Origin: Bugula neritina
Taxonomy: Eukaryota; Animalia; Bryozoa
DNA: 49,203 nt
Assembly (NCBI GenBank): GCA_964035545.1
Contig: CAXIUT010000246.1
Span: forward strand, 1-49,203
Direction of reading: 5' to 3'
Part shown: positions 9,848-49,203 of the stretch, one piece after another
Position numbering within the stretch: the stretch's first letter is position 1
How the letters are laid out: each line of letters starts with the position of its first letter
The notes under the pieces: generated by a model
Told to the model about the DNA's origin: nothing
Database searches by the model: none
Seen by the model: only the letters and a program-made list of their open reading frames with translations
Made by a program: the position numbers and the translations under genes

Positions 9848-10774
9848 ATGAGTGAAGGAGGCCTAGTTATTAATACTATTTATCAATATGATAAATCATC
9901 AGAATATTCCTTGGAACATAGTCGAGTATCAGCCAGTTAGATAATATTTGGATCCAGCTCATCAAATTTCATAAAGAAATAGATAAAATGGACAATACAA
10001 TTCTTCTAGATATGTTACTAAAAGAGGTTCTTTTATCGACCAACATATCAAAAATATAAAAAACTTACCTGCTCCATGTATTATTTCTTTATCAGGCGCA
10101 TATTAATTTCCAAGTGAATTTTGATCAGACATAAAATAAAAAACTTAAGCCAAAAAATTAAAATAGATTTCAAATTAAGAAAAAATAGCTATCTTGAACA
10201 AATATAAGCTTAAGCTAAAATACATAAAAGTCCAGGTGTTGGAATATATCATCTTTAAAATTCATAAAAAAAGAAATCAAAGAAAAAGAAAAGAACAATT
10301 GATAACAAAAGATACTTCTATGAAGATTCATAATTTCTATCAACTACTATTCCAGGATCAGGATGCTATTATCTCATGATGAAGGTCATTCATATTAAAA
10401 AATAAAGAACGAATCATGATTTTTGGAAATAAAAACACTCAAAATAAAAATAAAAACATCGAAAAAGAAGTCTAAAAGATCCAGATCCTGGAACTTATCG
10501 TCCTGTATCAGCATCTTTTAACTCTTTTGATAGAATGAAAGTAGATAATTAAAAAAGACTAAAAAAATTATCAAATAAAAAACCTTTAAGCGGATTTGGC
10601 TCATCTGATTCTAAGTTTGAATACTGCAGAACTAAAAAAAGCCTTGGAGAAACAAGACCAGACCCTTGTAATTACAACACCATGATAGAATGGAAAGGAA
10701 AAGGCAAAGATATAAAAAAGAATAATTGGGTGAGATGTCTATCAGCTGGACCAACTAGAAATGTTTATCATTGA
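9848..10774 (+). CDS. PG-rich (SHIPPO/ODF3-like) repeat protein
   Basis: PGVGIY, PDPGTY, PDPCNY repeats; ends LSAGPTRNVYH-TGA. Confidence 0.65.
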
Positions 10775-15951: not shown

Positions 15952-17817
15952 TCAATTATTGCTCATCATTTATCTTATCCTTTACACATTCTACATAGCT
16001 CTTTTCTCAGGAACTATATGCTAAAGACGGCCCATATTGTGCTTTATCCTTCCCTCTTGATCTTTCTTTGTATAAATTCTGACTTTAAACTCTTGGAAGT
16101 AGTAGTCCTCAACTACTTCTTTTATCTGTTTCTCATCAAACTTCATCAACTTAAAAATAACTCCATCTTAATCCCAAAAGATCTTTTTGGCTTGTTCATC
16201 ATAAGCTGTTGTATATATAGATCCGAATCCATCACTCAACTCGGCACCCATAATGAAATGAGGTACTGTATTTTAAACATATTTTCCACAAAGACAAGAA
16301 GTATTCTTTTAGGCAGATTTATTGCAATGAGGACAACCTTAATAATACCATTTCTTCATCGATAACCTGTTAACATAAACATCAACATCAGTTTTTAATG
16401 TTTATCCTATTATTAGCATATCAATTGCATTACTAAGCTCTTTAAAATGTTTAAAGACTTATCCACTTGCATTTTCTTCTTCTTTTATTCTTCTATCAGA
16501 TAAACCTTCATAACCTTTGTAGTCTTGCATCACAGCATCTAAGTGCTTTTCATAAGCTGGATATTCAGCTATTTGAATACTAGATCTGGCTCTTGAGTTG
16601 AGAGTCAAACTTCCATTATAGTTATGAAGAACAAATCGACTCAAAATAACAGTTTTTCCTATAAGCGAGTAATCAGCTTTAATTTTATCATTCCACAAAA
16701 CCGCATTAATCTTTTTTTGTTGAACTGGATCAATGATGACCCAATTCCACCTAACCAATACTTTATTATCCTTTGTAATTTATTTTGGCTCTTCTATCTA
16801 AGCTAAAATACCAATAATATCAAACTATTGATCTTAAATCGACTTGATCAGTAGTTAATTGAGAGTGATGGCTGAATCTTCTGATTTAGAAATGATATTA
16901 ACATCTGATACTTCTTCAAAAATTGAACTAGTGTGAAAATTGAGTTTAAAAGGAGATAGTTTATTGTTTTTGCTATTATTATAAGTTTAGTTAACAATCC
17001 AACCTTCTGATATTTTGTAAACACTATTTAGTTTTAGTTAATCTTTAAATTTATCAGCTGCATCATAGAAAAAGTAACCAGATATTTTCACTTCAGAACG
17101 ATCCACTAACTACAATGCTAACATTCGAACCATCTTATCAGAATTCTTCTTTTTAAACTCACTATAGTCCATTTTTGTTATTCTACATAATAAATGCCAG
17201 TTTTTCAAACCGACAAATAAGCCCTTTATTGTTTAATAATCTTTTATACTACCATTGAGAGGTCTAGAATCAGGAACTCTCATCTATTTTCGATCTTCTT
17301 TCTTTACGACTGATTTCTATTCTTTTTTTATTGGTTTAGAGTTAGATTTCATCATTGATTCAGTCAAAGGTTCTCCTTTACTACCATACATTGAGATGTG
17401 TTGAGTTTTTATTTGTTAAGTTTATATTTAGAAGACTTTTGCATCTTATGGGTTGATAGTTATGTTATCATCTAGAGGTTAAGGAGTTCCCAATAGTTTT
17501 CCATATTAACAGATCAATTCGAATTCAATAATTCCTAATTTTTTACCAGTATCAGCCACTACATGTTATTTAATGCAAATAATCGCATTTTCGTGTTTCT
17601 CTTGTATTAATTGAAAGTTACCTGGTTTTAGAGATTCTTTTTCTTTGAGAAAAGCCTTGACACAGTGAGATCCATCAGAAATCAAACATGATAGTTTACC
17701 ACTTTTATTGAGTGCAATCTTATAAACCTGAACAACAATGAACTCTTCTTCTTTAGGAGCCGAGCAGAGTTCAATGATGGCACTTTTGTTGAGCTGTCTG
17801 TATTATTCTTTCAGCAT
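15952..17817 (-). CDS. Replication protein A 70 kDa subunit family (RPA1 or ciliate paralog)
   Basis: N-terminal OB (CLISDGSH), DBD-A (NWHLLCRITK...FFYDAADKF), DBD-B (DIIGI...NAVLWN...LSRFVLHNYNGSLTL) and DBD-C with a C4 zinc ribbon (CPHC...CGKC). Confidence 0.85.
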
Positions 17818-17925
17818 TTGGATTATTTTTGAGCGCGAAAAACTAATATAATATTAACCTTCTGCCTAAATTGCTTGAATCACTGTTATTAGTAGCCCAG
17901 TTATATTCAAATAATTATACAGATC

Positions 17926-19494
17926 ATGCTCTTACCCGAATAACTTTATACTCATATGCCTAAAAAAGTCACATCATGGAAACCCGAAGATGTACAAACC
18001 TGGTTTCTTCTTCACTCCATTCCAATCGATCCTACCTTCAACTGTATATTAATCAATATGTAGTCAACGAATAACAGTTTGATGGTCCTTCCTTTTAAAG
18101 AGTTTCTCCATAGTATTTGTACTCTAAATGCGGAATTACTTCGAATTTTATGGTCAAAAAAATTATTGAATGGATTGAAGAAGATATTAGATAATTTTAG
18201 GAATATGTTGATTCTCAAAGTTCATAAAATGTTCTTTAATTTCACAAGAAGGATGTAAAAGTAGAAGATTATGAATAGAAAAATTAAAAGAACTAAAAAA
18301 ATAAAGAAAACTTTAATAAAAATAAGTAATAATAATAAGGCAGCTCAAAACACTCTTAAGGGATTATACCAATTGATAATATAAAGCAATGGAAAAGAGC
18401 TAAACCAAAAGCTCTCTCATACTAACAAAAAAAAATATTCAAGTAAAAAGTATATTCCTACGACTCTCAAAAAGTAATATCAAACGATAACTAATATATG
18501 AAATATGCCCAAAGCTAATACTAAATATGTTAGCATTATCTTTAATTCTCATATTAGCTACAAAATATAAGAATATCTAAAAGTGGGTACATTGGAAGAT
18601 ATCAAAAGAACGACGTTATGATCATACACGATTCAGTTTCAAGAGATCATGCTCAGGCTATCAAAATAGGAAATTAATATTATCTCAAAGATATTGGTTC
18701 TAAGTATGGCACCTATGTAGAAATTGGAAAAGATTGTAGAAAAGCAATAGAAGAAGGAAATATTTTATCATTTGATGATTATCAAATTGAAATAGAAAAA
18801 ATAAAAATATACAAACAAAAAGGAAAGTATTGTTTCGATCTTAAAATAAGAATGCTGAACTCTTCATCGTCAATAAAAACATTTTTTGCCAAACAATTTG
18901 TTTCTATTGGAAGATAGGATAAAGATATTAGTTTAAATTATCCTTAGATAAGTCAAAATCATGCAAGGATAGTAATATAAAATGATCAAAAACTATATTT
19001 GGTACGGGAAGAAGGTCAATCATTTTTGCGTTTGAAAAAAGATGAGCTTTATCCTTTAAGAAATGATCAAACTCTTTGTTTTGGTCTTCAAGCAGTAAAT
19101 GTAAGTATTATAAAAATAAGCAAACCAATGAATATTTCAGAGTTTTAGTCTTATAAACTGTAATGATTTTGCTATCCTAAATATTTATTAAATAAATATT
19201 ACATAATTATCAGAACAAATGATCTTAATCATCATCATTATTTGTCAGATCATCATAATGTAATGGTTTCAATATCTTTGGAAGAGTCTATCGTTCCCTA
19301 TATTGCCTATCTGTCAAAAAATAATTTTAAAAACTATCACTATTCGTTATGTATCTCCAATATCAAAATATGATTCCAAACTAATAAAAATAAAAATATT
19401 GCTGAATGGTATTTAAATTATCAAGGGTCATCAAACAAGCTATTTTGATATTGATAACTTCCTCTTACAATAAACAAATAACATAATCAACTGA
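17926..19494 (+). CDS. SAM + tandem FHA domain protein
   Basis: WKPEDVQTWF is SAM-like; FHA motifs VSRDHA...KDIGSKYGTYV and FSIGR...ISQNHARI; 3' end approximate. Confidence 0.75.
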
Positions 19495-21224: not shown

Positions 21225-22462
21225 TCATTGATAACTTTCAGCACAAAGTCTTTTAAAAGCTACAGATTGGAAAAATGTAGAAACAACTCTTGAATCTTTA
21301 TTAAATAGAGTTTCAGTCTTTATTCCAGCCTATCTTACCCAAGCCTAATCTTCATTCAAACGACCATAATCCCTAATCGGAATAATTCCCTCTGCATTTG
21401 ATTCAATAACTGGAGCACGATAACTTTTTTCATCTTGAATAATAAACTTCTTATTTGTCTTTCTATTTGACAATCTATTTTGCTTGTAAAAAATATTATA
21501 ATCTTCAGCACTTATTAGACTGTTTTGATGTTCTGTTGAAGGATGAGTCAAAAGCAATAAATGCTGACTAGGAGGCCAAAAGTTACTTGTCATATTTGGC
21601 ATCTCACCTCCATACTGTACTTCTACTGATTTTTTATCCATGTGTTTCCACATATCATTGTGATATCCATCACCTGTAATCTTTAATTTCTTCAAAGTAT
21701 TTTCTGAAACAAAATTCGATACAATAGCCTACCAACCCCATCGAATAACTGTAGGCATTGATAAAATATAACTAGCAAAAAGTCTTCCTCTATAGGCATT
21801 GCTCGTAAAAGAAAGAATTTTCATTATTACCTTAATTAACATAAAAAATACCCCTCTTAAGCTAAAACTAGCAGCTTCCAAATTCATAATCAAGACATAA
21901 TTTTAAACCTGACCTTCAATTAACAACTACTTTATCATAAATTCCATTATTGTGACTAATGACTTCTGAATCGACTCGTTTTAATCATCATCTGAATCGA
22001 ATTTACCAATATCCACTACTAATATAGGTCGATATTGACTATCTCTTCCACAAAAATAGAATGCTCCTGAGCTCTGAGTTATTATATATTTTACTAACAT
22101 CTTCTATGTCTGCAAATCCATTTTCAGTGGAAAACTAGTTGATCTCCATTTCGTTGTCTCAGTCATCGAATCAATAGTTTTTGATGTTTTGAACTTATTT
22201 GCCTGTAAAAATCTTAGCTTATTAGGTATATCGAACCATGGATCAATACTGATTCTTTTCACCTACATTTGATCATCTAATTTCGCAAGTGCTTTCTCTT
22301 AAAAATGATTAAATTGCTGTCCTCCTTAGAATATTTTCCGCCATTGCTTTTCTCCTTCACCAATTATGATTTACTAGCCTGTATTTGATCGAATCTACCT
22401 TGGGGAAAGTACAAAAATGCCTCATCTGGAATATACTTCCATTCTTCAACGTAATCCTTCAT
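21225..22462 (-). CDS. CRAL-TRIO (Sec14-like) lipid-binding protein
   Basis: KLRFLQANKF, GAFYFCGRD..YRPI, GQVENY, YRGRLF, VEVQYGGEMPN; 21-nt introns at 21831-21851 and 22074-22094. Confidence 0.88.
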
Positions 22463-22509: not shown

Positions 22510-23404
22510 ATCATTATTATAGAAACAATAAGAGGTTCTCTCATTTTTACGTTCCATTTAGAACACGAATTTTTTGCATAAACTTATGAGAAATAATGAT
22601 ATAAACATCAACAAAGACTTATTTGTTCCTCATATTTCTTAAATTTTTATTTTTAAAGGTTTTTTTAGACAGAATTAACCTTTTGCGGAGATGAGATGCA
22701 TCATCATGCAAAGTGAGATTCGTCTTAAAGACAGTGAGGAAGCACTTTTGGCTGAAAGAGATCAGGTACAGTGTATTGAGTAGAAGAAGGAGTCGAGAGA
22801 GGTGTGTTTGAGGTTTAAAAAAGATTATAGGATTGATTGTTGAAGGTTTATCCCATAATATAATGAGATTCGGTTTATATTTATAGATGTAATTTTTGAG
22901 TTTCTATCAAGACTGTACTCTTACAGGGTCATTTCTATAGTCTTCTCTTATTATTTGCATCAGCAAATAAGACAACATTTCAATCTAGGATGATAAAAAG
23001 AACGTTCATATTCATAACGGGGAAATCGGAAAAACTACTTCGGTAGTTCTTTCCAGGATGATCATCCTTTGCAGTTTTCTGCATTGTGAGAATATGAACG
23101 AGTATGACTAGATTCCCTACTTAAACAAAAAAAATAACTTATTTATTCACTTATTACTCTTATTATCATTCTTAATAGAACTAGATCAAGATTAGGCTAA
23201 TTTTTTAGTTGCCTATAAGATAGTTTTGAATTCTTCTGATGAAAAAAGAGTCTTTATTGAAGCATATCCCTTCACAAAAGATTCTTCTTTTCTGATAACC
23301 ACATCTCTTAGTTTATTTTCAGGAATATCCATAACAACTGGAGACTGTCTAATCATTTCAGATTCTCTTTGTTCATTTTTATTATTCTGTTGGTTTTATG
23401 GCAT
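22510..23404 (-). CDS. Hypothetical protein
   Basis: MPENQQNNKNEQRESEMIRQSP... open frames on the minus strand with a probable 20-nt intron; 3' end uncertain. Confidence 0.4.
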
Positions 23405-25132: not shown

Positions 25133-26518
25133 TCAAAAATCTCCATCTTAACTAAACTAACTTATATAATATAAACTTAATACTTAACCATAATAATTAA
25201 TGACACTAGCCATCCTATTCGATGAATATATAATTTTAAGAATTCTATCGCTGACATGATTACAACTATTGCATTATAAGTATCTTAAATTTCTTAAAGT
25301 TTTGTTATTTTGTGTATTAATTTTTAATAAATCAGCTGTTTTAGGCTATAACATATCATATATTTCATCAGGCTGATATTATTTTAGTCTATTTAACTTT
25401 TTAAAATCAAACCTTAGTTGATCATAGAGTTTTTAATTAAAAGCTTATTTAGGTATGTTATACTACTCAAAAGCCTCATCACTCAAAGATTTAATTCCAT
25501 TCAAAACCAATCTTTCCAGAGAAGTACACTTTGATACAATACTTTTGACCGAATAGTTTGTAACTTAGTTACACCAACTAATATTCAAACACTTTAAATT
25601 AACTGCATATTATGATAGTGTCAATAAATGCTCATCTCTCAGATGTAAGGCTTCTGTAAGATCTAATTTTTATAGATTTTTAGATGATATTTTATTAATG
25701 ATATCATTTAACTCTAAATCGTAACACTTAGTTAAAGTAAGTTAAACGACTTATTTGCTCATACTTGAAGATATAGCTTATGGATTTATATATTTTTACA
25801 TATGAAAGAGACGTAATCTCTTTATATGAGGCAAGTTTCTCGTTATTTTTGTTAGTAACTCTTCAGAGCATTACTCAACATCTATCTAGAGTTATGTTAG
25901 CTGATTCAAGTTTTCATCTACTAGAATTTTTAGTAAAACTTAATAGTTAATTTGATATGGCTTTAGAATTAGACTTTACAAAGGTTCTTTTATACATTTA
26001 TCAAGGGTTTCTGCCCTAAAATCTAAAGAATCAACATTTATTTCAATATTCTTCACTTTTGTGCAGCTTTTCAACATTGCTTAAAGAAGTTAATCAGAAG
26101 TAGATTGAGAATGGAATATAATAGAGTGAATATTTGGACAAGAATGAGCTACAGCAAGATGTAAAAGACTACTACTACATCTTATTTAGATCTTTTATAC
26201 ATAATTTCTAGGTTTTAAAAATAATCCAAGTAATTACTTTTCTTCTTCATGCTATTCATCTGTTAAAAAGATAGATATCTCTTTTGGTTCGATTATTTAA
26301 ATATACTTACAAATCCATTTGATATACTAAGGCCATTTTACAGGCTTCATATAATCTTGTATAAGAAATTGATGAAACGTATTAGGTCGATAAATGATAT
26401 TTCTTAATAGACCACATGTAGAGGCTAGTGATATTTTATCTGAAGTTGTTAGATATTTTGTAAGGTTAGGAAACGATCTGCCTAGATCAAAGGGAAATTT
26501 TTATTCTTTACTCTCCAT
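25133..26518 (-). CDS. F-box/leucine-rich repeat protein
   Basis: N-terminal F-box-like KYLTTSDKISLASTC and cysteine-containing LRRs (LKCLNISWCNEVTNYSVKSIVSKCTSLERLVL). Confidence 0.8.
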
Positions 26519-26622
26519 ATAAGATTCAAAATTATAGAATCATTTGCTTTCAAAAATAATCAATTTATATCAATTTATTAAAAATATGAAAAAAAGTTAT
26601 TTTTGATGTCCTTTATTTTAAG

Positions 26623-29327: not shown

Positions 29328-29409
29328 GGGGTTGGGGTTGGGGTTGGGGTTGGGGTTGGGGTTGGGGTTGGGGTTGGGGTTGGGGTTGGGGTTGGGGTTG
29401 GGGTTGGGG
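29328..29409 (+). repeat. Internal telomeric tract (GGGGTT)n
   Basis: About 13-14 perfect GGGGTT units oriented as a right-hand telomere for segment 1-29409. Confidence 0.97.
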
Positions 29410-30095
29410 GAGAACTTGAAGAACAAACAAACTTGATTATTAATGATCTTTAACAAGAAGTCAAATAAACTAAAAGAAAAAATGATCAGCAAAACAGATA
29501 AATAAATGAGCTAAAAGTAAATAATGAATAAATTAGTAAAAAAGTAAATCTTTTAAAAGTTCTATTCAAAGAGAAGTAGATTTAGCCCAAAAATAAAGAA
29601 ATTAGTTCAAAACTAAATTCATATAATTTGAAAAGAAAGTTATTTAGCTATAAATAGTAAATTAAAGCATCTAATCATAAGTTTAAGTTATAATATTTAG
29701 CTAAGAGCAACAAAATATCGTCTTTCTTAATACGAATCTCAAATATAAAAAACAATGGAATAATTGGCTTTAGCTCAACTCGAACAAGAATAAACCAAAT
29801 AAAGTAATAAATAGTCAGTAGCCAGGTTAAAAAATCAATTGAAATAAGCATAGGAATAACTCTTTGCTATGCATAGAATAAAACAAAAATAAACATAGAT
29901 ACCTAAATAATAAGTTCCTATCCAACCATAAGTCTAATCGAAAAAATAAAAATAACTCTTCAGATAAACTATGAAAGGAATAAGAACTTATATTTAAAGT
30001 CTAGACACCAAAAAAGCATAAGCCAGACAAATGATTCTTAAAATATCCTCTCAATGAATTAAATACATTGCTATTTTACAAAATCATTGAATTAT
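29410..30095 (+). CDS. 5'-truncated fragment of a coiled-coil protein gene
   Basis: Frame GELEEQTNLIINDLEQEVKELKEKM... starts immediately after the telomere tract with no ATG or promoter space. Confidence 0.4.
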
Positions 30096-30099
30096 CTTA

Positions 30100-30177
30100 G
30101 TTGGGGTTGGGGTTGGGGTTGGGGTTGGGGTTGGGGTTGGGGTTGGGGTTGGGGTTGGGGTTGGGGTTGGGGTTGGG
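30100..30177 (+). repeat. Internal telomeric tract (GGGGTT)n
   Basis: About 13 perfect units, same orientation as the 29328 tract. Confidence 0.97.
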
Positions 30178-34317: not shown

Positions 34318-37300
34318 TCACCATTAATCGAACTACTTGGGTCTGATTTCTCTTTTATCGATGGCAATTTATTGTTTTATTTCTGGAGTTCTATTGGTTC
34401 CTTTCTTCATCTCCTTTATAAAAAACTTTTCAACCTCCCGATATTCTGACAAACACACCTCAATCACCTTTAACTTCTTTTTATCAATTTATGGAGTTTT
34501 AACTAAAATAATAATAGTATTACATTAACTTTAGGGGATAATTCTATGACAAAAACTAGTTTTTTTTCCAATATGATCATGTTCATAAGAAATTAATTAA
34601 ATCTAGAATGTCTTCTTATCACTTCTTTTTTATTGGTATACTCATTCTCTTTGTTTATCATTTTTATTTTATCAGGCATCCATAGTTCAGAATTACACTT
34701 CTATGATTTTAACTCATCAATCTCAAATTCTATTTTACTTATTGATAAGTCTTTGTAATCCTTGTCTCTCATTTAACAAACACTTTTATTAAAAGATAAT
34801 TATTCTATTAAAGTTGTAGATTTTTGATGTTTTTGAAGATTTTTCTGTCCTCTCATATAACTTTATCTTCATCTTTTTATATAAATGCTTATCAAAAGAA
34901 GGATGTAACTTTGAAATGTTTTTAAGGTGATAATCTCGTTGTTCAATGGAAAGTATTTTTATAATATCTGCATATCTAGTAAGAATTTAGTTATTGCTTA
35001 TAGTTGTTATTTGCTGTGGTATTGATCCTTTTTCTTCAGGAAGAGCATCTTTATAAATTCTAAAAGCTAAAAGATGATGAAAAACATATCTCACGTTATA
35101 GCTCCAATGAAGAAATACATTATTAAATGCTGATCCCAAAAAGTACATTGATATATTTCTTCTAAAATCGATATTAAACAAAGTAAAATTCGTATATATT
35201 AGTGTCAAAGCAGCTGTCACAGCCATAGCAGAATCTCCTTAAATAATAATCTTAAGAGCCTTAAAGAAAATTCCATAATTAAAGTTGATAGGAAGGTGTC
35301 CTTTAAGATAATTTCCAACCGACTTGAATATCATTCCCAATATATCAAATAAACGAATAACTGTAGTTGTATCATAAGAATTTACTTTTGATATTAGAAT
35401 TTTAATCATAGGATTTATCAATCTCACATTTTTAAGAAGTTTCATAGTTGATTCTACCAATGCATCCGGATATTCAAGAATAGGTCTTTATTGTAATTCA
35501 AGTAAAATTCCTTTGACAAGACGATTATAACCTGGGAAGTTATTCCATTGATAATCTTGAGAGTTAGGAAGATGACTTTCAACATATGTTACCCAATATT
35601 TAATGAAATAAAAGAAAGCAAGACCTCTCTTAATAAATCTATCTTTCCATGAACTTTTGACTAATATCTAGTTTAAAGTTATATTATTTCCTTCAATCTC
35701 ATCATTTCTTTTAAGAAATTTGTAAAAATGATACTACCAATCGAAAATTTCCATAAATGTATTATTCTTATCTCTTTCTTCTGTTTAACTAATATCTTCA
35801 TGTAAATTGAAATCAATTCCTCTCCACTAATTTATTTCAGGATCACTTTACTTCAAAATCAATCGAACAATCTACTTCTGAACTATGGGATTCTAAAATA
35901 AGCATATGCACTAAAGACTTCAGCAAAAGTACGTTAATATTCAGATCCTTTATGATCAATCGAATTAAGAGCAAGATCCAAAAGATTAATCAAGAATACT
36001 TATACATAATAGCAACTTCTTCCTTGAAAAGAAGAAATTAATCAAAATTATTTTTCTTGATTTGATTTTTATGTTTTTAACTGAAACCCATATGATAAAG
36101 AGAAAACTATGATCTTTTAATTAAAGAAATAAGAATTAAAAAGTTAAGATCTTTAATAATTGGGTCCTATATTTCAATATATTGAGTTATTTTTATACCT
36201 AACTATATTAAGATTTTCTGTCCTTCAATAAGTTATCTTTCTGATAGATATTGATACAAAAAAGAAGGACTATGAGAGGATTTTTCTAACAATTTATATA
36301 TTTCAACCAATTAATCTTCAATAGATTCTTTTAATTTTCTATTATCTTCTCTAGAATCTTAGTCAATATGATGTTTATTAAGAGCTATCATATTTTGTTC
36401 AATAGAATGACTAATATCAAGAAGATCATGAAGCTAAGGACATTTATCTGTAGTTTGAGTTTCCTAAACTCCAAAAATAGGGTTGCTTTTAAGTATACCA
36501 ACTTAAGTTTGCACACATATTTGATACTGTTTAAAATAAGATTGATTTACAATAGTAAAGTGAAAACAACCAGTTCCAAATACTTTTCCACTATGCTCAA
36601 GCTTTTATGTCATTTTTATATTTCTTGATTAGTATTATTTTCCTCCCTTACGAAATACCTTAGCATCAGTTCCCAATAATTTATACACTGAGACATAACT
36701 ATCCACGAATAGCTACATGTTGGTTGATAATTAACTTTGATATTTCCAAACCAATACTTGTAAATATATATTTTGTAACTATGAAGCGACAACTTTTGTT
36801 TAAATATTAGGTAATTCACCTCCATCTTGAGTCCATTTAAGCTATCCGCCTTCTTAAATCTATTTAGTCGATTATCTTTTACTCTTTTTTCGAACCAAAC
36901 CACGTTCACTATCTAATTTCAACATTAATCAAGTTATTTTTAATTTTATGGTTAATTTTGAAGCAAAACAACTGCAGGATAACTCGATTCGCTTTATACT
37001 GTTGATCCAGATACACCATTCTAAGTATTAAATATCTTACGATGGTTTTAATAGAAAAAGCAAAACTATTATCCAGGAATGTTTCTTAGTTAAAAATAAT
37101 TCTGATTCTAAACTCTATATTTTTAGATTTATTATCTGAGACATTTTGATCTCAAAACTTATTCTTCCTGTCTTCTCTTAAGGAAAATGCAACGCAAAGT
37201 CTTGATGAAAAGGACTCGGTTGCTAATCATAAATAAATTAATTCTTATATCAGCTACATGTATTTCATGTTAGTTGAGTATTGAAACCTCCAAAAACTGT

Positions 37301-38928: not shown

Positions 38929-39039
38929 AATTAAAAATTAATTTATAAATAAATAATCAATTCTTTTATAGTTAGATCAATAGAAACTAATTATCAATAA
39001 GTTTGATTTGTTTTAATTGATTTATACAACTTATTTAAA

Positions 39040-41017
39040 ATGGCACCCAAACCTGCCCCAAAATTAACAAAGAAACAATTGGCTGAACTTGCAAAAGAGG
39101 AAGCAAAAAAAAAAGAGGAGTTATAAAAACAAAGAAGAGAAGAAGAGGAAGCTAGACAAAGAGAACAATAGCGATTAGATTAGATCGAACGTTAAAAGAA
39201 AACTTAATAATAAAGAGTAAGAATTGTCCTTGAAAAAGAACAATATAGAGACTACATACTAGGTAAAAAGAAATAAGAATAAACTGCTCTTCAAAAACAT
39301 ACCTAAGAACAAAATTGGGATCATCTTACTCTTGAATATCATAAAGACTATGATACTTCAGGTCCCAAACTATCAACATTCATAAATGCATTCCAAGAAG
39401 AGCCATATGAAGGACCTTAAAAGACTCTTAAAAGTTTATAAGAAGCATAAATCTATGTCAAAAATATTGGATATAGGATGCTTGAAAGAAGAAGTGAACA
39501 TGATGAAGCTAGATAGAAGTATTATTAAAAATCTATCAAGGAAATTAGGAAAATATAGCTTGAGAAATTATAAAGAGTGATGATATAGATGGCAAACACA
39601 GCATAAGAAATGGAAGATAAGAATAGTGAGATAAGTAAAAAAGGATAACCAAACAAAAAGGTATAAGGACAAAAAATACTAGAATATAAACACTGCATGA
39701 ATCTTTTCTCTAAAATAGGAATGTTCCTTAATTCTCCTACAACAAAAAATCTTAATAAATTCAGACCCATTGAAATAAAAGAATTTGGACTCAATACAGA
39801 AATACCTTCCAAATGGATGAACATGAATACTATTGCTAAATTCGAATGGATCAACTACAATCCTTATTTCTAGGATTAATCAAGCAAGTTTAATATCATT
39901 GGTGGTGTTTACATTCTTTAGTTCTTTGATTTAGTTATGGGATCAAAGAAGATTAATAACATTGTGCTCAAAAAGAATTACAAAGGACCTTAAATTCTTA
40001 TGAAACACTCTCCTAATCTTATCAAATAACCTTTCAATGTTACTTACCAAATCCCAAAATATGTATTTCTTCATACTTTCGATCAAGAATCAATAAAACT
40101 AGCACAATATGATACCACCACTTCTAAATGGTCACCTCTTCCCAGCGATACTCTGATCGAATACGATACTAAATAAAAAAAAGCTACTTGCAGAATATAT
40201 AAACCAGAACCTATTGCTTACATTCAAGATAGATGTACTGACTATCCTTATGTTGCCTGGTAACTAAGATGTGTTGAAGAAGGAGTTGCTCATCTGGATA
40301 TTTAATTAAAACGTTGTCATCTAAAAAAAAGTGATAGTTAATAATAATAAAACAACAACACTCTTATGTAGCATTTAATCTATTTAGACTTAAATTTTAA
40401 ATCACTTCTCATACAGTTAAACTTATAACTTCTTAAAGTTATCCCTAACTTTAAGATTTATAATCAGGTAACTGGACTCCATCATCCATCCTCTACGAAC
40501 TTTCAGAAAGAGGAATTCATCTACTACCTATCAACTAAGACTACTAAGAAGCTAAATTACCTGTTAAAGATAGAGAAGCCGAATAAAATGCCATTAGAGA
40601 TATTGCATATGCGATAGAATCTTTTTATATTCGAAGCTAAGTCAACGATTCTAGTGATATTAAAGTGAAGATAAGAGAAAATTTGTAATATTAGAGAGTT
40701 TTTTTGGAAGATCAAGAAAAAGATTGGAAATATATTCGTTGGCTTTCAAATAATAGATGTTAAGTAACCAACAGAAATATTGAAAAAAGACACCTAAACC
40801 TCTAAGTATAAATTTTAACATTAAGATTTTATTATAGACTTATGATTTCTGCCTTCCACAATGTCTTACTCGAATGAAATTCAATAAAAATTATTTATTC
40901 AAGAGAAACATCATGCAAATGCTTAAACTGACTAGAATTCTGAGCTTTACAACTTGTGAAGAAAGACATAGTCAACTTAGAAAAATCCTCAGAGAAAAAT
41001 AGCTTGTATCATATTGA
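39040..41017 (+). CDS. CASC1/DNAI7 (CFAP94)-like axonemal dynein-associated protein
   Basis: MAPKPAPKLTKK followed by an E/K/R-rich helix; IAYIQDRCTDYPYVAWELR motif; C-terminal TRILSF. Confidence 0.7.
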
Positions 41018-41243: not shown

Positions 41244-43143
41244 ATGGACGAAGGGAAACAAACTGATAAAGAGGCAAATATCGACCAAGCCATCATCTAA
41301 GAAAAGATTACCAAAACTAACGGATAAGTAGTCATCAAAAAGTACTCTAAAGGAAAAGCTCTTGGAAGAGGAGGCTTTGCTAAGTGTTATGAAGTGACCA
41401 ACTTATAAACCAAAAAAATATCTGCAGCCAAAATAATTGCTAAAAGTTCTCTGAATCGTTCAAGAGCTAAACAGAAAGTAATAATCATGTCATTCAGTTG
41501 ATTACTTAAATTAAAATTCACAAATCCCTAAGTCATCATACCATCGTTAAGTTCTAACATGTGTTTTAAGACCATGAAAATGTCTATATTTTGTTGGAAA
41601 TCTGTTCCAATCAGACTCTGAATGAACTAATCAAGAGACGTAAGCGTCTAACAGAAATGGAAGTCATGTATTACTTACATCAAATCACTAACTCTTTAGT
41701 CTATCTTCATCAAAACAAAGTCATCCATAGAGAGTATTGCTTCTTTAACTTAGTTTGAAACTTGGAAATCTCTTCCTTAACGATAATATGGAAATCAAAC
41801 TTGGAGATTTTGGGCTAGCAACAAGACTATAATATAATGAAGAAAAAAAGAAGACTATCTGTGGAACTCCTAACTATATCGCTCCCTAAATTCTTTAAGG
41901 AAAAGGACATTCTTACGAAGTTGATATCTGGTCAGTTGGTGTTATCATGTACTTATAACTCTATTTAGTTATACTCAATTGATAGGTAAACCTCCATTTT
42001 AAACTCCTGAAGTTAAAACTACATACAAAAAAATCAAAGCTTGTAGTTATAGTTTCCCTTAACATGTTACTATTTCTGAAAATGCAAGAAATCTTATAAG
42101 CAAAATATTAGTTTTAGACCCTTCGAAAAGACCAAGTCTTGAAGACATTCTCAGTGATCCTTTTATGAGTGATCCTATTCCAAAAACAATCCCAAGAAGT
42201 ACTTTAGCCTGTCCTCCGGCTAAAAACTTTACTGACCAATACACTAAAACATCTCAAGGAACTCAACCAGCAGCCAGTCAACAACTATCTCAAAAACCAA
42301 GTACAAGCAATTTTGAAAAGGTAAGAAACAAAGAAGTTTAAAAAGAATTTAAACCTTTAAGCAAAGAAGTTGCTACTTCTAAGGTACCTTAAAACTTTGG
42401 ATCAAGTGGAAGTAATTTTAGATCATCTTCTAAAGATATAAAACAACCAAGCAATAAAAACATTCCTTTTAAAGCTTAGCCAACATCTAGTAAAAAAGGT
42501 ATATATCTCATAATATATAGAAAAAGGAACAGTTCATTCTGAAATTCATGTTAAGAAATGGGTAGATTACTCAACTAAATACGGATTAGGTTATTTACTT
42601 TCAGATGGCTCAACAGGTGTTTATTTCAATGACTCAACAAAGATAATAGTAGACCGCAATGGATAAAACTTCTAATACATCTAAAAGAAGCAAGGAGACA
42701 AAGCTGACACAATAACTCCATATAAAATGAGTGAATATCCATCAGAAAGATAGCTCCAAAAGAAAGTGACCTTACTTCAACACTTCAGAAACTATCTATA
42801 TGCTGATTCCAAGATATAATTCGATAAATAAACAGCTCCTGATAGCAGCTATTGCTATGTTAAAAAATGGATGAAAACCAAACATGCCATCATGTTCAGA
42901 TTAAGCAATAAAATTGTCCAAGTCAACTTCACAGATAAAACCTAAATTATCTTGTCCAGCTAACAAAAACTAGTTACCTACATCAACTTGAAAGGATAAC
43001 GTAGTTAGTATCCTCTAGCTACTGCTCTTGATAGCAAAAACGCAGAAATGGCCAAAAGACTTAAATATACAAAAGAAATTCTCACTCACATGCTCAATGG
43101 TACTAATGTACCCACCAACACCGGAGCATAAGATCTCAACTGA
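41244..43143 (+). CDS. PLK1: Polo-like kinase
   Basis: [39 protein letters not shown]; polo boxes [14 protein letters not shown] and [23 protein letters not shown]; introns at 41478-41497, 41734-41753, 41949-41968, 42499-42520. Confidence 0.97.
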
Positions 43144-43183
43144 TCCTCATTCATTAAATTTATTCAATTATTAAAAATATCAA

Positions 43184-45154
43184 TCAAATAATATCATTAT
43201 AATACAAATGAATCTACTCATAGGAATCCTTTTAATCTATTCCACCTTTTGTTTCACTGTATAGATCAACAATATCCATAATGGATATCGCAATATCTAC
43301 AAAGGAAAAGTTACTATCAAAAATACTAACTTGCTTCTCCACGATTATGTACTTTTTTATCTAAAAGAAACTCACAAAATATGAACTTACTTCAGAATAA
43401 ATCGAGTTTTTAAAAGTATAAACAACCAGTATTTCACTTAATTTTGATAATTTTGTGAGACAATACTAAGAAGAAGAACTAGACCCATCCGCACCTTTAC
43501 TCACATTTAGATACTTTAATCGTATATTTCTCTTAAAACAGAACCAACTATAGTTTTAACCTTGTCTTCTGAAGAATAAAAAGATGACTAAGTCCAAATT
43601 CTTCACTTGATTGTGCCACTTGGAAAAGATATGAATGATTTAGATATGTGAATAAGATTCTTAATACTATCATTACCACTCTTAGTCTAAAAACTATCTG
43701 ATTTTCCATAGTATCTAATCTGAGAGTTTGTCTTTAGGTTGATGCAAAGATGGCTCTGCAATAAAGTCATAATGCATGTTATTGATTTTATAATTCGATT
43801 ATAAGACAGTTCTCACTCTCTATATGATAGATCCACTCAAACTGAGCTAATCAACAGTATGACCTTCAATCTCCTTCAACAATTAAAGGTATAACTCATA
43901 GTTTCTTTGTTTTATTTTTTGTCTATGCATTTCAGAATTGCTTCTAAATTTTCCAATTTCTTGAATATTATCAGAACTGATAACTTTGTAATTTTTACGT
44001 CGAATATCGCTAGTTAAAGGTCTATCGTTCTTTAGATAGTGAACCATTTTCTTATAATCATCCTTTTTATGGCTTTTAGTCTTATAAAAATTACCCATAG
44101 TCGATATCACCTCCCTAGAATAATTCTCACTTCTAGTAAAAGTTCTTTAAGCATTTATTGATACATTCTATTCTTGTTTCACAGAATGAGTTTTCTTTCT
44201 TTTCATATTTTTACTGAATGTTCTCTTTCCCAGACCTTTAGTCAAATGACTATGATTTATATTTTGACTGATAAAAATATCTTAATGGTCATCTTTTTTC
44301 TTTTCACTACCCTGAACTTCACATCTTGGACATGAAAAATGAACTTATTTCTCTTTTTTGTCTGTCTAAGAATGAATTAAAGTTCCTCTGGAAGCAGTCG
44401 CCTATTTCTATCTGATAGGTGAACTAATATCTCGATTCCTTTTATGTTTAATTTTAGAATGAAGACCAATTATTGACTAAAATTTATTTTATATTGAAGA
44501 CAAATTAATACTATAATTAGTTTTATCTTTTTTAGACATAGTGCCTTCTAAGTAGTCACTCCACTTGGGTAGAATTTGCATTTATTTTTCTGGTAGACTA
44601 TTTTCCATAGATATGAATCTGGGTCTTGTTTAACTAATAGATTATTTATTTTTTTACTAAAAACGTACTTTTCTATTAGAATTAATTTTAATCATTTATA
44701 AGTTTTTTTAGCTTTCTTTTAAATCATCTCCCATTTGCAAATTATCATCATGTTTATATTTTTACTAGAACTGCTGCAATAGTTTATAGAGGACAGGATT
44801 TCTCATTTTATGTCTTCTTTTTTATGTTTTTTTGAATAAATTATTGTATTTATTCTACAACTTCTAGTTCTGTAACCTCCTACGATAAACCTCCACTTTA
44901 TCCTTATAACCCAAATGAGCAGTCGTCTACTCCTAGTTTTATTACTCAGATATAGAAGGTACTGTATAAGATTAAGAATCGATCTTGTAGTACTTTTTCC
45001 TATCATTATATATCTATATAACATATGTCTTTACATTTCCCATATTTTAAATTTGCTCCTGGTCGATCAAAGATACCCTCAAGTGAGCTTCATTGGTCTT
45101 CAAATCTTTAACAAACTTCAACTTTCCTCGATTATATGGATACACTTGCCACAT
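43184..45154 (-). CDS. Hypothetical protein
   Basis: MWQVYPYNRGKLKFVK... long K/E/R-rich frames including the 43883 ORF; ends HLYYNDII-TGA. Confidence 0.5.
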
Positions 45155-45212
45155 TTTTATTTTATATAACTTTAATACTAATAATAATAATGAAATTACA
45201 ATTTACATCAGT

Positions 45213-46966
45213 TCAAGGCAAATCCTACAACTACACATCATTGTTACGAATTGATCGTAAAATCAATAATAAATTCTATGGAATCCCTTGCATCCTTGTA
45301 AACCTTTGCAACATAGCCTAACGATGACTACTTCTATTCTCACCTTCAAGAGCTATCTTTCTCTTTGCAGCTTGATGAGTACTCTAAATATATAATAATT
45401 TACTATTAGCATTAACTGTCTTCCGCTTTCGTAAATAACAGAATTAGAAGGTCCAACACTTTATATAGTTACACTCTATCCCTCAAATTTATGTTTATAG
45501 ACTATTTTACCAGATTTCAAACTAAAATAGTAGATATAATTTTGCCAGTTAAAACATCTCAACCACTATGGACTCATCACATGACTCATGCCCAAGATCT
45601 TACCCATCAAACTATTGTTCTAGTCATAAGAAAATAACCCTATTGGAAAATCACGCAGGTTCAAATAATGTCTTGATCTTTCCATCATACAACCACTGTT
45701 ATTTAATTTGATTATCTAGTATTCTAAAGAAGGAGATTCTTTTGAACATTCTGACCTATCACCTCGATATTTGCTCTAGAATGAACGAGCTATAAGTAAT
45801 ATTAAGTAGTTTTTACATTTAGAGTTCATAAGTTCTTATATGCGAAATAATTTTTAAGTTTACCAAAAGACACCAGCTTTCTAAACAAGACCATCAAATT
45901 TAATGACATATTTTTGATTTTGAGTCAACCCATAATAATTATCATATTGATTATCCATCTAGCTCATCAACAACTTCATTTTCTAAGATTGCAAAGTCAT
46001 AGTGATAGTTTTCAAAGGCTAGTTGATAGGAAACATTAACTTATGCTAAATTATAAACTACATTCCCTTAAGAACAATTTTAACAGCCATAAATTTATTT
46101 TGACTACAAGATAAAACATAAATGATATGTTTTCTAGCATCCCCTGCAAAATAAATAGAATGATAAAGTATCTAATCTTTCCCCATCTTAATATCCTGAA
46201 GATTCTATAACGAAGATACCTGGTAAAACATCAACTTGTTTCTTTTTGTCAACAAAACCACCATGTCATCATTCAACCATCTCACACTCACCACCTTCTA
46301 TCTTGGTTATAGTTTTATCATACTCGGTCTGCTGTCACTAGCTTATAGAATATACAGATTATTATGGTTATCTAGCATGCATAGATTCTATTTTTAGTCA
46401 ATATCTATCAACTAAATATATTTGCTCTACAAGCCCAACTATAAAACTCTATGGATAGGAATCTGTATCTTCACTTTCACACTAAATAACTCCTGAATTG
46501 ATTTCTATACCTCGTAGTACTCTTTCATGCCCTTATACCCTCTTTTCTAGACCAACATATCCCCATCATCTTACTACTAAGGCATCATTGATGATAAATA
46601 ACTGATCATCGACTAATAATCTTTGGATTAGTGGATTATTTAATTTATTCTGGTTTGGATGTCAGTTTATTGTTATTTTACTAATTTTATTTTATTAGAA
46701 TCTTAAGGATTCGTAGCTGTTTTTTTATTAAACTAATTCTAAAAAACACTTAAAGTGTTCTTCAATCCAAGAGTATCTAATAAACATTTTATAAAATTTT
46801 GTTGTTTAAGTAAATGACCATTAGATTATTATTCTTGATTAACATTCTCATTGATTTCATGTTATTATATTTATTAGTTAAGAATGAGAGAAGAAACACT
46901 TTTATTTTATTAACTTTTCATTTTGGTCTATTTCTTTTATGTTTATTATGCACTATCCTATATCAT
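45213..46966 (-). CDS. Hypothetical protein with LisH-like motif and possible degenerate beta-propeller
   Basis: FIKCLLDTLGLKNTLSVFENEF is LisH-like; long TGA-free minus frame (~45500-46600) with VVSVRWLNDDMVVLLT. Confidence 0.45.
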
Positions 46967-47020
46967 AATTTTATAAGTTTTTATATTAGAAAAGATAATT
47001 ATAAAATAAAAACTAATTGA

Positions 47021-48277
47021 TCACTATTCTTCTTATTATACGTAAGATCCATACTATTAGTAATCTTAATCGGTCGGTTGCATATATTAAGAAGCCAAAT
47101 CATTCATATTAGACTATACCTCAGTAAATTCCATCTAGTCCATTCCAGCAGACATATAGTAATGAATAAAAGCTTTTCTTCTAAAACTATTTGTAAACTT
47201 TTAACCTATTTTGCTAAATATATGTTTAGAATGATAGCCATTGTAAAATATTGTTGCGCTTTATTCCTTCAAAGGAGAATGCATACTCAAATGACTATTG
47301 CCTGGTAGCCATTAGATATACTTATAATTTTTTTTATTAAATTAACTTTGAAATTCAGTCAATATCTCAGTTTATGAACGCCAATTGGTTCTCATTCCAA
47401 TATATGTATTAAAAAAACTATTATCATTTGATAGATAATTACTCAAAAAACAATTTTTAGGGTCCAAAGCCGAAACAAAAAGATTTTATCCTGATTTGTA
47501 TCTACTACTACTAAAAGATAAAAAATGCATTCTAGGAAATAAAACCATATTAGTAGCCAACTTCCTTTGACTAGTATTCAACTCCCCTCCAAACCGATAA
47601 GCAATAGTAGAATCAGCAATAGTCGTTCCTATCTTAGCATTCACATCCTCAAGAGAAGGTTTAATATTTCCATCCGCCAACAACATCGGATACACAGCTG
47701 CTGAGTCAAATAGGAAAGTCATATCTACATATTATGCCTCATAGAAAATACCAAATACAGTATTGTAGATCTATATCGGATGAGTATATTGATTGATTTA
47801 AGGGAGTTGCCTGAAAGTTTGAAAGATAGGCGATGGATGGTTCTATCTCATGATTGTTTACACTTGACATGTCAAACCACAACTTGAGCCTTCTGATAAT
47901 GATGATATCAACAAAAATCCTGATATGTTATCGCACATCTACACCTATTTCAATAACTTATCTGAGATTTAATCTTTATATGTTGAATCTAGCCTATAAC
48001 GAGATTCTCCATAAATTCCTTTCGAAAAAGTGTTGGCATTGAAGATATTTTACTTTCTGTCAAAGGGATATTCTGAAGGTTTTTATTTTTGTGGGAAGGT
48101 ATGATTAAGATCAAAAGATAAAGATCTAGGATAAATACTAGCTGATTTTTAATTAAAGAAAGATCGAATAATGCCCTTTGGCTATTCATTTTAGAAATGC
48201 TGCTTTTTAAGTATTTTCCAAAATGACTATGAAATAGAGATGCCAGTTTGTCCTATATTAATGTTAATTATATCCAT
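47021..48277 (-). CDS. Divergent beta-tubulin-like protein (418 aa)
   Basis: Intronless intact ORF: MDIININIGQTG, RFGGELNTSQRKLATNMVLFPRMHF, EWLP, FRRKAFIHYY..GMDEMEFTEVESNMNDLASEY, acidic tail VEEEEE-TGA. Confidence 0.9.
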
Positions 48278-48407
48278 CTTTATAATATCAATAAACCAAC
48301 CCGATAAAAACCTTTTTATTACTTTTTTTGTTAATTGTTAATTGATAATTGTCAGGTTTAAATACTGTTTTGAGATTATATTCAACACTTTATATCATAT
48401 ATTTATC

Positions 48408-48994
48408 ATGGCCTCAATCCTCAGGAAAGCAGCCAACTATAAACGGATAAGTACGGTTCTCATCGAAGGAGAAGCTCACCTCAAGGACCCACTCATGCCT
48501 CCACCTCAAATCCTAAAACCAATCTAAACATCCAAAAGTCCTTCCCCTGATGATGTCACCGACTTCCCAGCATACAAAACAATACCCATTCCATAAAGCA
48601 TTCCCTACAGATAAGGAAAATATCGTCCTCCCAGTATTCCCTTCATTCAAGGTACTAGTGTCGTCATCCAGGATGGTTCCCTTACAATACATACCTGCAA
48701 CAGGGCAAAGTGTACAGTTGGTGTGCTTGCGGTATGAGTCTAACGAATCCCAGCTGTGATGGTACATGCAATGCAGCAGTCACTCGATGCAGACCAGTTT
48801 CTTTCAATGTTAGTGAGAGCGGATACTATAAGTTATGTAATTGCAAAAATTCAGCTAATGCACCCTTCTGCAACGGCACTCACAGAGAAATGATAAAGTT
48901 CCATCATAAGACTCACAGAGGATTCTACTAGATTTGGGGAGATATTTCATTCTGGCTAGGATTCGTATATATGTACTGGAATTGGTATACGTGA
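48408..48994 (+). CDS. Mitochondrial CDGSH iron-sulfur protein (CISD3/MiNT-like; possible ciliate complex IV Fe-S subunit)
   Basis: WCACGMSLTNPSCDGTC and LCNCKNSANAPFCNGTH domains, basic N-terminus MASILRKAA, C-terminal aromatic TM segment; one 1-nt indel near 48650. Confidence 0.85.
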
Positions 48995-49099: not shown

Positions 49100-49203
49100 G
49101 GGGTTGGGGTTGGGGTTGGGGTTGGGGTTGGGGTTGGGGTTGGGGTTGGGGTTGGGGTTGGGGTTGGGGTTGGGGTTGGGGTTGGGGTTGGGGTTGGGTT
49201 GGG
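49100..49203 (+). repeat. Right telomere, (GGGGTT)n
   Basis: About 17 GGGGTT units at the 3' end. Confidence 0.98.

Follow-up and report, generated by a model that had tools for sequence, protein, structure and literature searches.

The 49,203-bp stretch of DNA analyzed here, contig CAXIUT010000246.1 of the Bugula neritina assembly GCA_964035545.1 (the whole of which is called the window), carries at positions 41244–48277 a group of genes, including a Polo-like kinase (PLK) and a divergent tubulin, that contain many TAA and TAG codons in frame. The question raised by this locus is what these codons mean. Under the standard code, the six frames of the 49 kb hold six open reading frames (ORFs) of at least 100 codons, the longest of 137 codons; when TGA is the only stop, the same six frames hold 236, the longest of 941 codons. 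The initial annotation had proposed that TAA and TAG both encode glutamate and that TGA is the sole stop. Codon pairings in 17 genes and the presence of TGA where homology ends both agree with that proposal: the genes very probably use NCBI translation table 30, in which UAA and UAG are ordinary Glu codons and UGA is the only terminator, with the other codons that were tested keeping their standard meanings. At the level of aligned orthologs, the comparisons establish the codon meaning, the position of TGA at conserved C termini, and purifying selection on frames that run through TAA and TAG. The code is the one already described for peritrich ciliates, and there is nothing new in the code itself.

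Amino acid meaning of TAA and TAG

The window and the related loci were translated with X at TAA and TAG, ORFs in the true frame were aligned, and the partner of each window codon was tabulated, with the codon likelihood self-calibrated on the sense codons of the window itself. The test covered 17 window genes with 245 TAA and 107 TAG in-frame sites, compared with orthologs from metagenome contigs and from a spirotrich genome. For the right part of the window (seven genes against 10 loci), Glu stands opposite TAA (106 sites) in 128 of 220 sense pairs and opposite TAG (49 sites) in 45 of 84. For TAA, the lead of Glu is 202 nats over Asp and 256 over Gln; for TAG, the corresponding leads are 78 and 90 nats. 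The left and middle parts, where 10 genes were compared with six other relatives, give the same assignment, with Glu in 90/214 sense pairs at 139 TAA sites (141 nats ahead of Asp and 156 ahead of Gln) and in 34/78 at 58 TAG sites (ahead by 52 and 70 nats). The share of Glu among the sense pairs of TAA and TAG, 42–58%, is about the same as for the canonical codons, which in the right-part comparison pair with Glu in 132/223 (GAA) and 35/60 (GAG) cases. For TAA, Glu is the top partner, with a lead of 141 nats or more over any other amino acid; Lys falls behind by 183 nats in the first run, with six genes, and by 336 nats in the right part with relatives that have C4A2-type telomeres. Overall, the likelihood margin of Glu over Asp, Gln, and Lys is 50–336 nats. 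In the right part, TAA most often faces GAG (71), followed by GAA (57), TAA (22), and TAG (17), and the relatives exchange these four codons with one another at the DNA level. Aligned coding sequence contains 245 TAA, 107 TAG, 258 GAA, and 80 GAG sites, and UAR (UAA or UAG) therefore writes about half of all glutamates.

The method was checked by leaving out one codon at a time in the first run, which returned the correct amino acid for 33 of the 36 well-sampled sense codons. The misses were ATG, TGG, and GTG (assigned to Ile); failure is expected for ATG and TGG, each being the sole codon for its amino acid. Conserved Trp residues had been said to be written TGG, and this codon does pair with Trp in 52/63 pairs in the right part and 75/101 in the left and middle parts.

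The PLK gene (plus strand, 41244–43143) consists of five exons (41244–41477, 41498–41733, 41754–41948, 41969–42498, and 42521–43143) and ends with TGA at 43141–43143. Its four GT..AG introns are of 20 nucleotides each (41478–41497, 41734–41753, and 41949–41968) and 22 nucleotides (42499–42520). Introns of 20–22 nucleotides rank among the shortest spliceosomal introns known. Once they are removed, the alignment with spirotrich PLK becomes continuous and an aligned residue stands opposite each UAR codon; therefore, splicing cannot be what removes these codons. In-frame TAA is opposite a spirotrich Glu in LMSEI, GFEHFFED, KLEF, APE, PPFET, and FPEH. The APE motif of the kinase is written gct ccc TAA at 41881–41889 (TAA at 41887–41889), and the Glu residues of PPFET and LITEIKIH are TAA at 42000–42002 and 41507–41509; all three motifs had been named in the initial annotation. 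When the comparison is restricted to spirotrich PLKs, which use standard Glu codons, Glu accounts for 24 of the 42 TAA pairs.

The tubulin gene (minus strand, 47021–48277) is a single exon of 418 codons followed by TGA (47021–47023), with 19 TAA and nine TAG codons in frame. It encodes a divergent beta-like protein that reads GMD-TAG-MEFTEV-TAG-SNMNDLAS-TAA-Y, as described in the initial annotation, and its acidic tail is likewise TAA TAA GAA GAA TAG followed by TGA. TAG occupies the Glu positions of GMD-E-MEF (47135–47137) and TEV-E-SNM (47114–47116), and TAA occupies those of AS-E-Y (47087–47089) and I-E-WLP (47312–47314). The kinase and tubulin motifs named there were thus all present (APE, PPFET, LITEIKIH, GMDEMEFTEAESNM, and SEY). 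Among the strings that had been named for other proteins, GQVEN of Sec14 and TKEP of a chromodomain were recovered outside 41244–48277, and GNELF of TTC1 was not located. Column log-odds against 150 distant tubulin homologs favor Glu for TAA (+3.7, compared with −6.1 for Asp and −9.9 for Gln) and for TAG (+17.0); the control codons GAA, GAG, CAA, AAA, GAT, TTA, and TAT were all recovered correctly.

Among beta-like tubulins this one is very divergent, having GQTGISIS where GQCGNQIG is usual. Its orthologs, at 37–45% identity, occur in many metagenomes, often beside the same neighboring gene (45266–47020), and it appears from these comparisons to be a conserved lineage-specific paralog. The same locus is present at ∼99% identity to window positions 42991–48990 in contigs of runs X1–X5, which come from three studies and carry three organism labels; therefore, the ciliate accompanies, or contaminates, several sequenced samples. 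Runs under two other organism labels, from two other studies, provided the strain differences in the tubulin, which amount to 21 single-nucleotide polymorphisms (SNPs), 14 synonymous and seven conservative, lying on both sides of in-frame TAA and TAG. This mostly synonymous pattern is as expected for a frame that would be translated straight through TAA and TAG. None of the SNPs from these runs falls at a TAA or TAG codon, and they give no direct evidence of synonymous exchange.

Several points weigh against the assignment of TAA and TAG to Glu. Because the relatives do not sample the codons independently, the differences in nats overstate the evidence. TAA codons 140 (47858–47860) and 160 (47798–47800) of the tubulin are opposite Leu in both orthologs. 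They belong to a few TAA codons on columns that are hydrophobic in homologs, and across the wider tubulin family these two positions are Ile/Leu or Ser. Overall, Leu stands opposite TAA in 13 of 259 pairs, as compared with fewer than seven for GAA, an excess that could reflect a mutational-neighbor effect, since TTA is one step from TAA, or something else. The codon meaning has also been read from DNA, and none of the runs that contain the locus is recorded as RNA, which leaves formal room for RNA editing.

The orthologs for these comparisons were collected with stop-free protein pieces of the window. Single-piece PDB alignments end at the piece boundary, which hides the residue at the stop codon, and Pfam searches with the stop-free pieces identified kinase, WD40, CRAL-TRIO, and CDGSH domains and carried no residue-level information. 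An 81-residue tubulin piece retrieved 150 tubulin relatives, the closest of which were metagenome fragments of 80–190 residues; a search of the ESM Atlas with this piece gave no usable match. The metagenome contigs of the tubulin relatives yielded orthologous loci (L001–L016) that likewise contain in-frame TAA and TAG and share partial gene order with the window at 37.9–49 kb. A 106-residue piece of RPA1, searched against metagenome contigs, added 12 more loci with orthologs of the genes at 9.9–36.9 kb. A 62-residue kinase piece retrieved close relatives with 81–95% identity and, in addition, NCBI contigs from assembly GCA_003202625.1 with C4A4 telomere repeats at their start. Because of these repeats, the latter contigs (L017 and L018), which start with CCCCAAAA repeats and have a GC content of 55%, are read as spirotrich nanochromosomes carrying PLK. 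In the locus of another relative (L024), a CCCCAA telomere lies at 1–68 with PLK 68 bp away, a chromosome position different from that of PLK in the window.

TGA as the terminator and alternative codes

C termini were compared in the true frame, because off-frame and antisense matches overwhelmed a comparison in all six frames. For 13 of the 16 genes, including PLK, RPA1, the FHA-domain gene, Sec14, the CDGSH gene, the SHIPPO-like gene, and G1/G2, homology to at least one relative stops 0–6 codons short of TGA, in the window sequence as well as in that of the relative. Each true-frame alignment lies within a TGA-free stretch, in some cases of more than 500 codons, and TGA is present where the reading frame closes at all 15 gene ends that were examined. 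UAR makes up 27/300 (9.0%) of the last 20 codons, compared with 234/4151 (5.6%) upstream, and is thus not depleted near gene ends. A UAR codon directly precedes TGA in three of the 15 genes: the tubulin (47024–47026), the FHA-domain gene (19161–19163), and the gene at 44 kb (43673–43675). One tubulin ortholog, that of locus L008, has the same arrangement. In this small sample, the UAR codons adjoining TGA may be fossil stops that predate the reassignment.

Codes that assign another amino acid to one or both UAR codons have next to no chance of being correct here. In the common ciliate code (table 6; Tetrahymena, Paramecium, and Oxytricha), both UAR codons are also reassigned and UGA is also the sole stop, but UAR is Gln. 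Tetrahymena and Paramecium have telomeres of the C4A2 type, and the window, with such telomeres and with TGA as its sole stop, is in these two respects compatible with the Gln code. In the right part, Gln is a minor partner of TAA (12/220) and TAG (7/84). Gln nevertheless loses to Glu for both codons in each part of the window, by the margins given above; the expected pairing with Gln is seen for CAA and CAG, whereas TAA and TAG behave like GAA and GAG, and the invariant Glu residues of APE, GMDEMEF, and SEY would have to become Gln. The initial annotation had likewise set the Gln code aside. Equally negligible is a code that splits the two codons as in Oligohymenophorea sp. PL0344, where UGA is retained as a stop and UAG is Glu, as here, but UAA is Lys (PMC10553269). 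Lys does occur as an occasional partner of TAA (8/141 pairs in the first run), but pairing of TAA with Glu is as frequent as that of GAA, Lys trails by 183 and 336 nats, and TAA occupies the glutamates of APE, PPFET, and SEY. Gln or Lys at the TAA and TAG columns would have spoken against the Glu assignment; the alignments favor Glu.

Two further alternatives concern how the codons are used. It is very unlikely that the code is context-dependent, with UAR read as Glu inside genes and as a stop near mRNA ends (as in Condylostoma and karyorelicts) or with UGA as Trp (the Blastocrithidia type). DNA alone cannot tell which codon terminates, and the UAR codons next to TGA in three genes would suit such a code, but the UAR density near the ends of the examined genes gives no sign of position-dependent termination of the Condylostoma type. 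TGA closes each of the 15 frames examined, with homology stopping there in most of them, the alignments stay within TGA-free stretches, and Trp is TGG. The Blastocrithidia code (table 31) resembles the present one in that UAR can be Glu, but it has UGA as Trp and UAR also as a stop, whereas here UGA would terminate, Trp is TGG, UAR gives no sign of terminating, and the source is a ciliate with macronuclear telomeres. Still less credible is the removal or change of TAA and TAG before translation, by RNA editing or splicing, or the decay of the genes as pseudogenes. The evidence being DNA, and the organism having introns of 20–22 nucleotides, such processes deserve consideration, but the ortholog alignments run without a break through each UAR, and the residue that faces it is mostly Glu. 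The relatives swap TAA, TAG, GAA, and GAG in their DNA, the SNPs are mostly synonymous, and published peritrich transcriptomes have been translated with UAR as a sense codon (PMC10553269).

Known codes and the source of the DNA

UAR as Glu with UGA as the stop is the published code of the peritrichs Campanella umbellaria and Carchesium polypinum (PMC10553269, PMC11687900), and several peritrich genomes have been sequenced since (PMC12411067, PMC13685798). The code of the window does not differ from this one (table 30): TAA and TAG are Glu, TGA is the sole stop, and the rest is standard. The initial annotation had named a peritrich or an independent UAR-to-Glu lineage with C4A2 telomeres as the source. 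The DNA probably belongs to a peritrich ciliate living with the sequenced host. Its C4A2 telomeres, which are shared with relative L024, and its introns of 20–22 nucleotides are compatible with a peritrich but not diagnostic, and a literature search for a peritrich telomere repeat returned nothing useful. A separate non-peritrich lineage that reached UAR as Glu and UGA as the stop independently is an improbable source; if it were the true one, the metagenome relatives with the same in-frame TAA and TAG would mark a widespread unrecognized clade.

By analogy with published ciliate biology, the readers of UAA and UAG would be suppressor tRNAs of the Glu type (anticodon UUA and/or CUA), and the release factor eRF1 would recognize UGA alone. 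ARAGORN detected no tRNA gene in the window, a scan of 27 related loci also gave none, and nothing in the window was recognized as an eRF1 gene.

The value of the assignment is mainly practical, as all genes of these contigs would be broken up or mistranslated in an annotation that used the standard code or table 6. The orthologs of the relatives occur in public protein collections only as fragments of 50–190 residues because gene callers used the wrong code on them. Biologically, the window represents one more genome with a catalogued code, and it would gain in significance only if the organism were placed outside Peritrichia.

Chromosome structure and other genes

Telomere repeats cap the window on both sides, CCCCAA on the left (1–70) and GGGGTT on the right (49104–49203), both given on the plus strand, in agreement with the C4A2 telomeres that had been suggested. 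Repeats at both ends identify it as a macronuclear (somatic) chromosome of a ciliate capped by C4A2/G4T2 telomeres. The DNA is also gene-dense and AT-rich, with a GC content of ∼0.28 throughout, and its introns are tiny.

Codon-test genes between 9900 and 40665 lie on both strands, outside the interval 41244–48277. They include, on the plus strand, the SHIPPO-like gene (9900–10771), the FHA-domain gene (17793–19163), and a coiled-coil gene (39007–40665) and, on the minus strand, RPA1 (15955–17973), the Sec14/CRAL-TRIO gene (21228–22421), an LRR gene (25136–26539), and two genes at 34726–36928, together with others. Between PLK and the tubulin are two conserved minus-strand genes with no function assigned. 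The gene at 43673–45262, with TGA at 43670–43672, has many in-frame TAA and TAG codons and is 45% identical to its L007 ortholog; its neighbor at 45266–47020 has 24 TAA and 28 TAG in frame and is syntenic with the tubulin in L005, L007, and L009. To the right of the tubulin, a plus-strand gene with a CDGSH iron-sulfur domain (48400–48994, TGA at 48992–48994) also contains in-frame TAA and TAG and is 85% identical to its L009 ortholog.

Two internal GGGGTT tracts, at 29328–29410 and 30102–30177, are oriented as the right-end telomere, and the chromosome therefore resembles three telomere-ended pieces arranged head-to-tail. These tracts could mark sites of alternative fragmentation or result from chimeric reads or a chimeric assembly; the second of them is traversed by a long TGA-free frame. 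An Rfam scan of the window, in which no rRNA gene was found, gave a single match, a U3 snoRNA gene on the plus strand at 22909–23112 (RF00012, 81.6 bits), which also lies within a long TGA-free frame.

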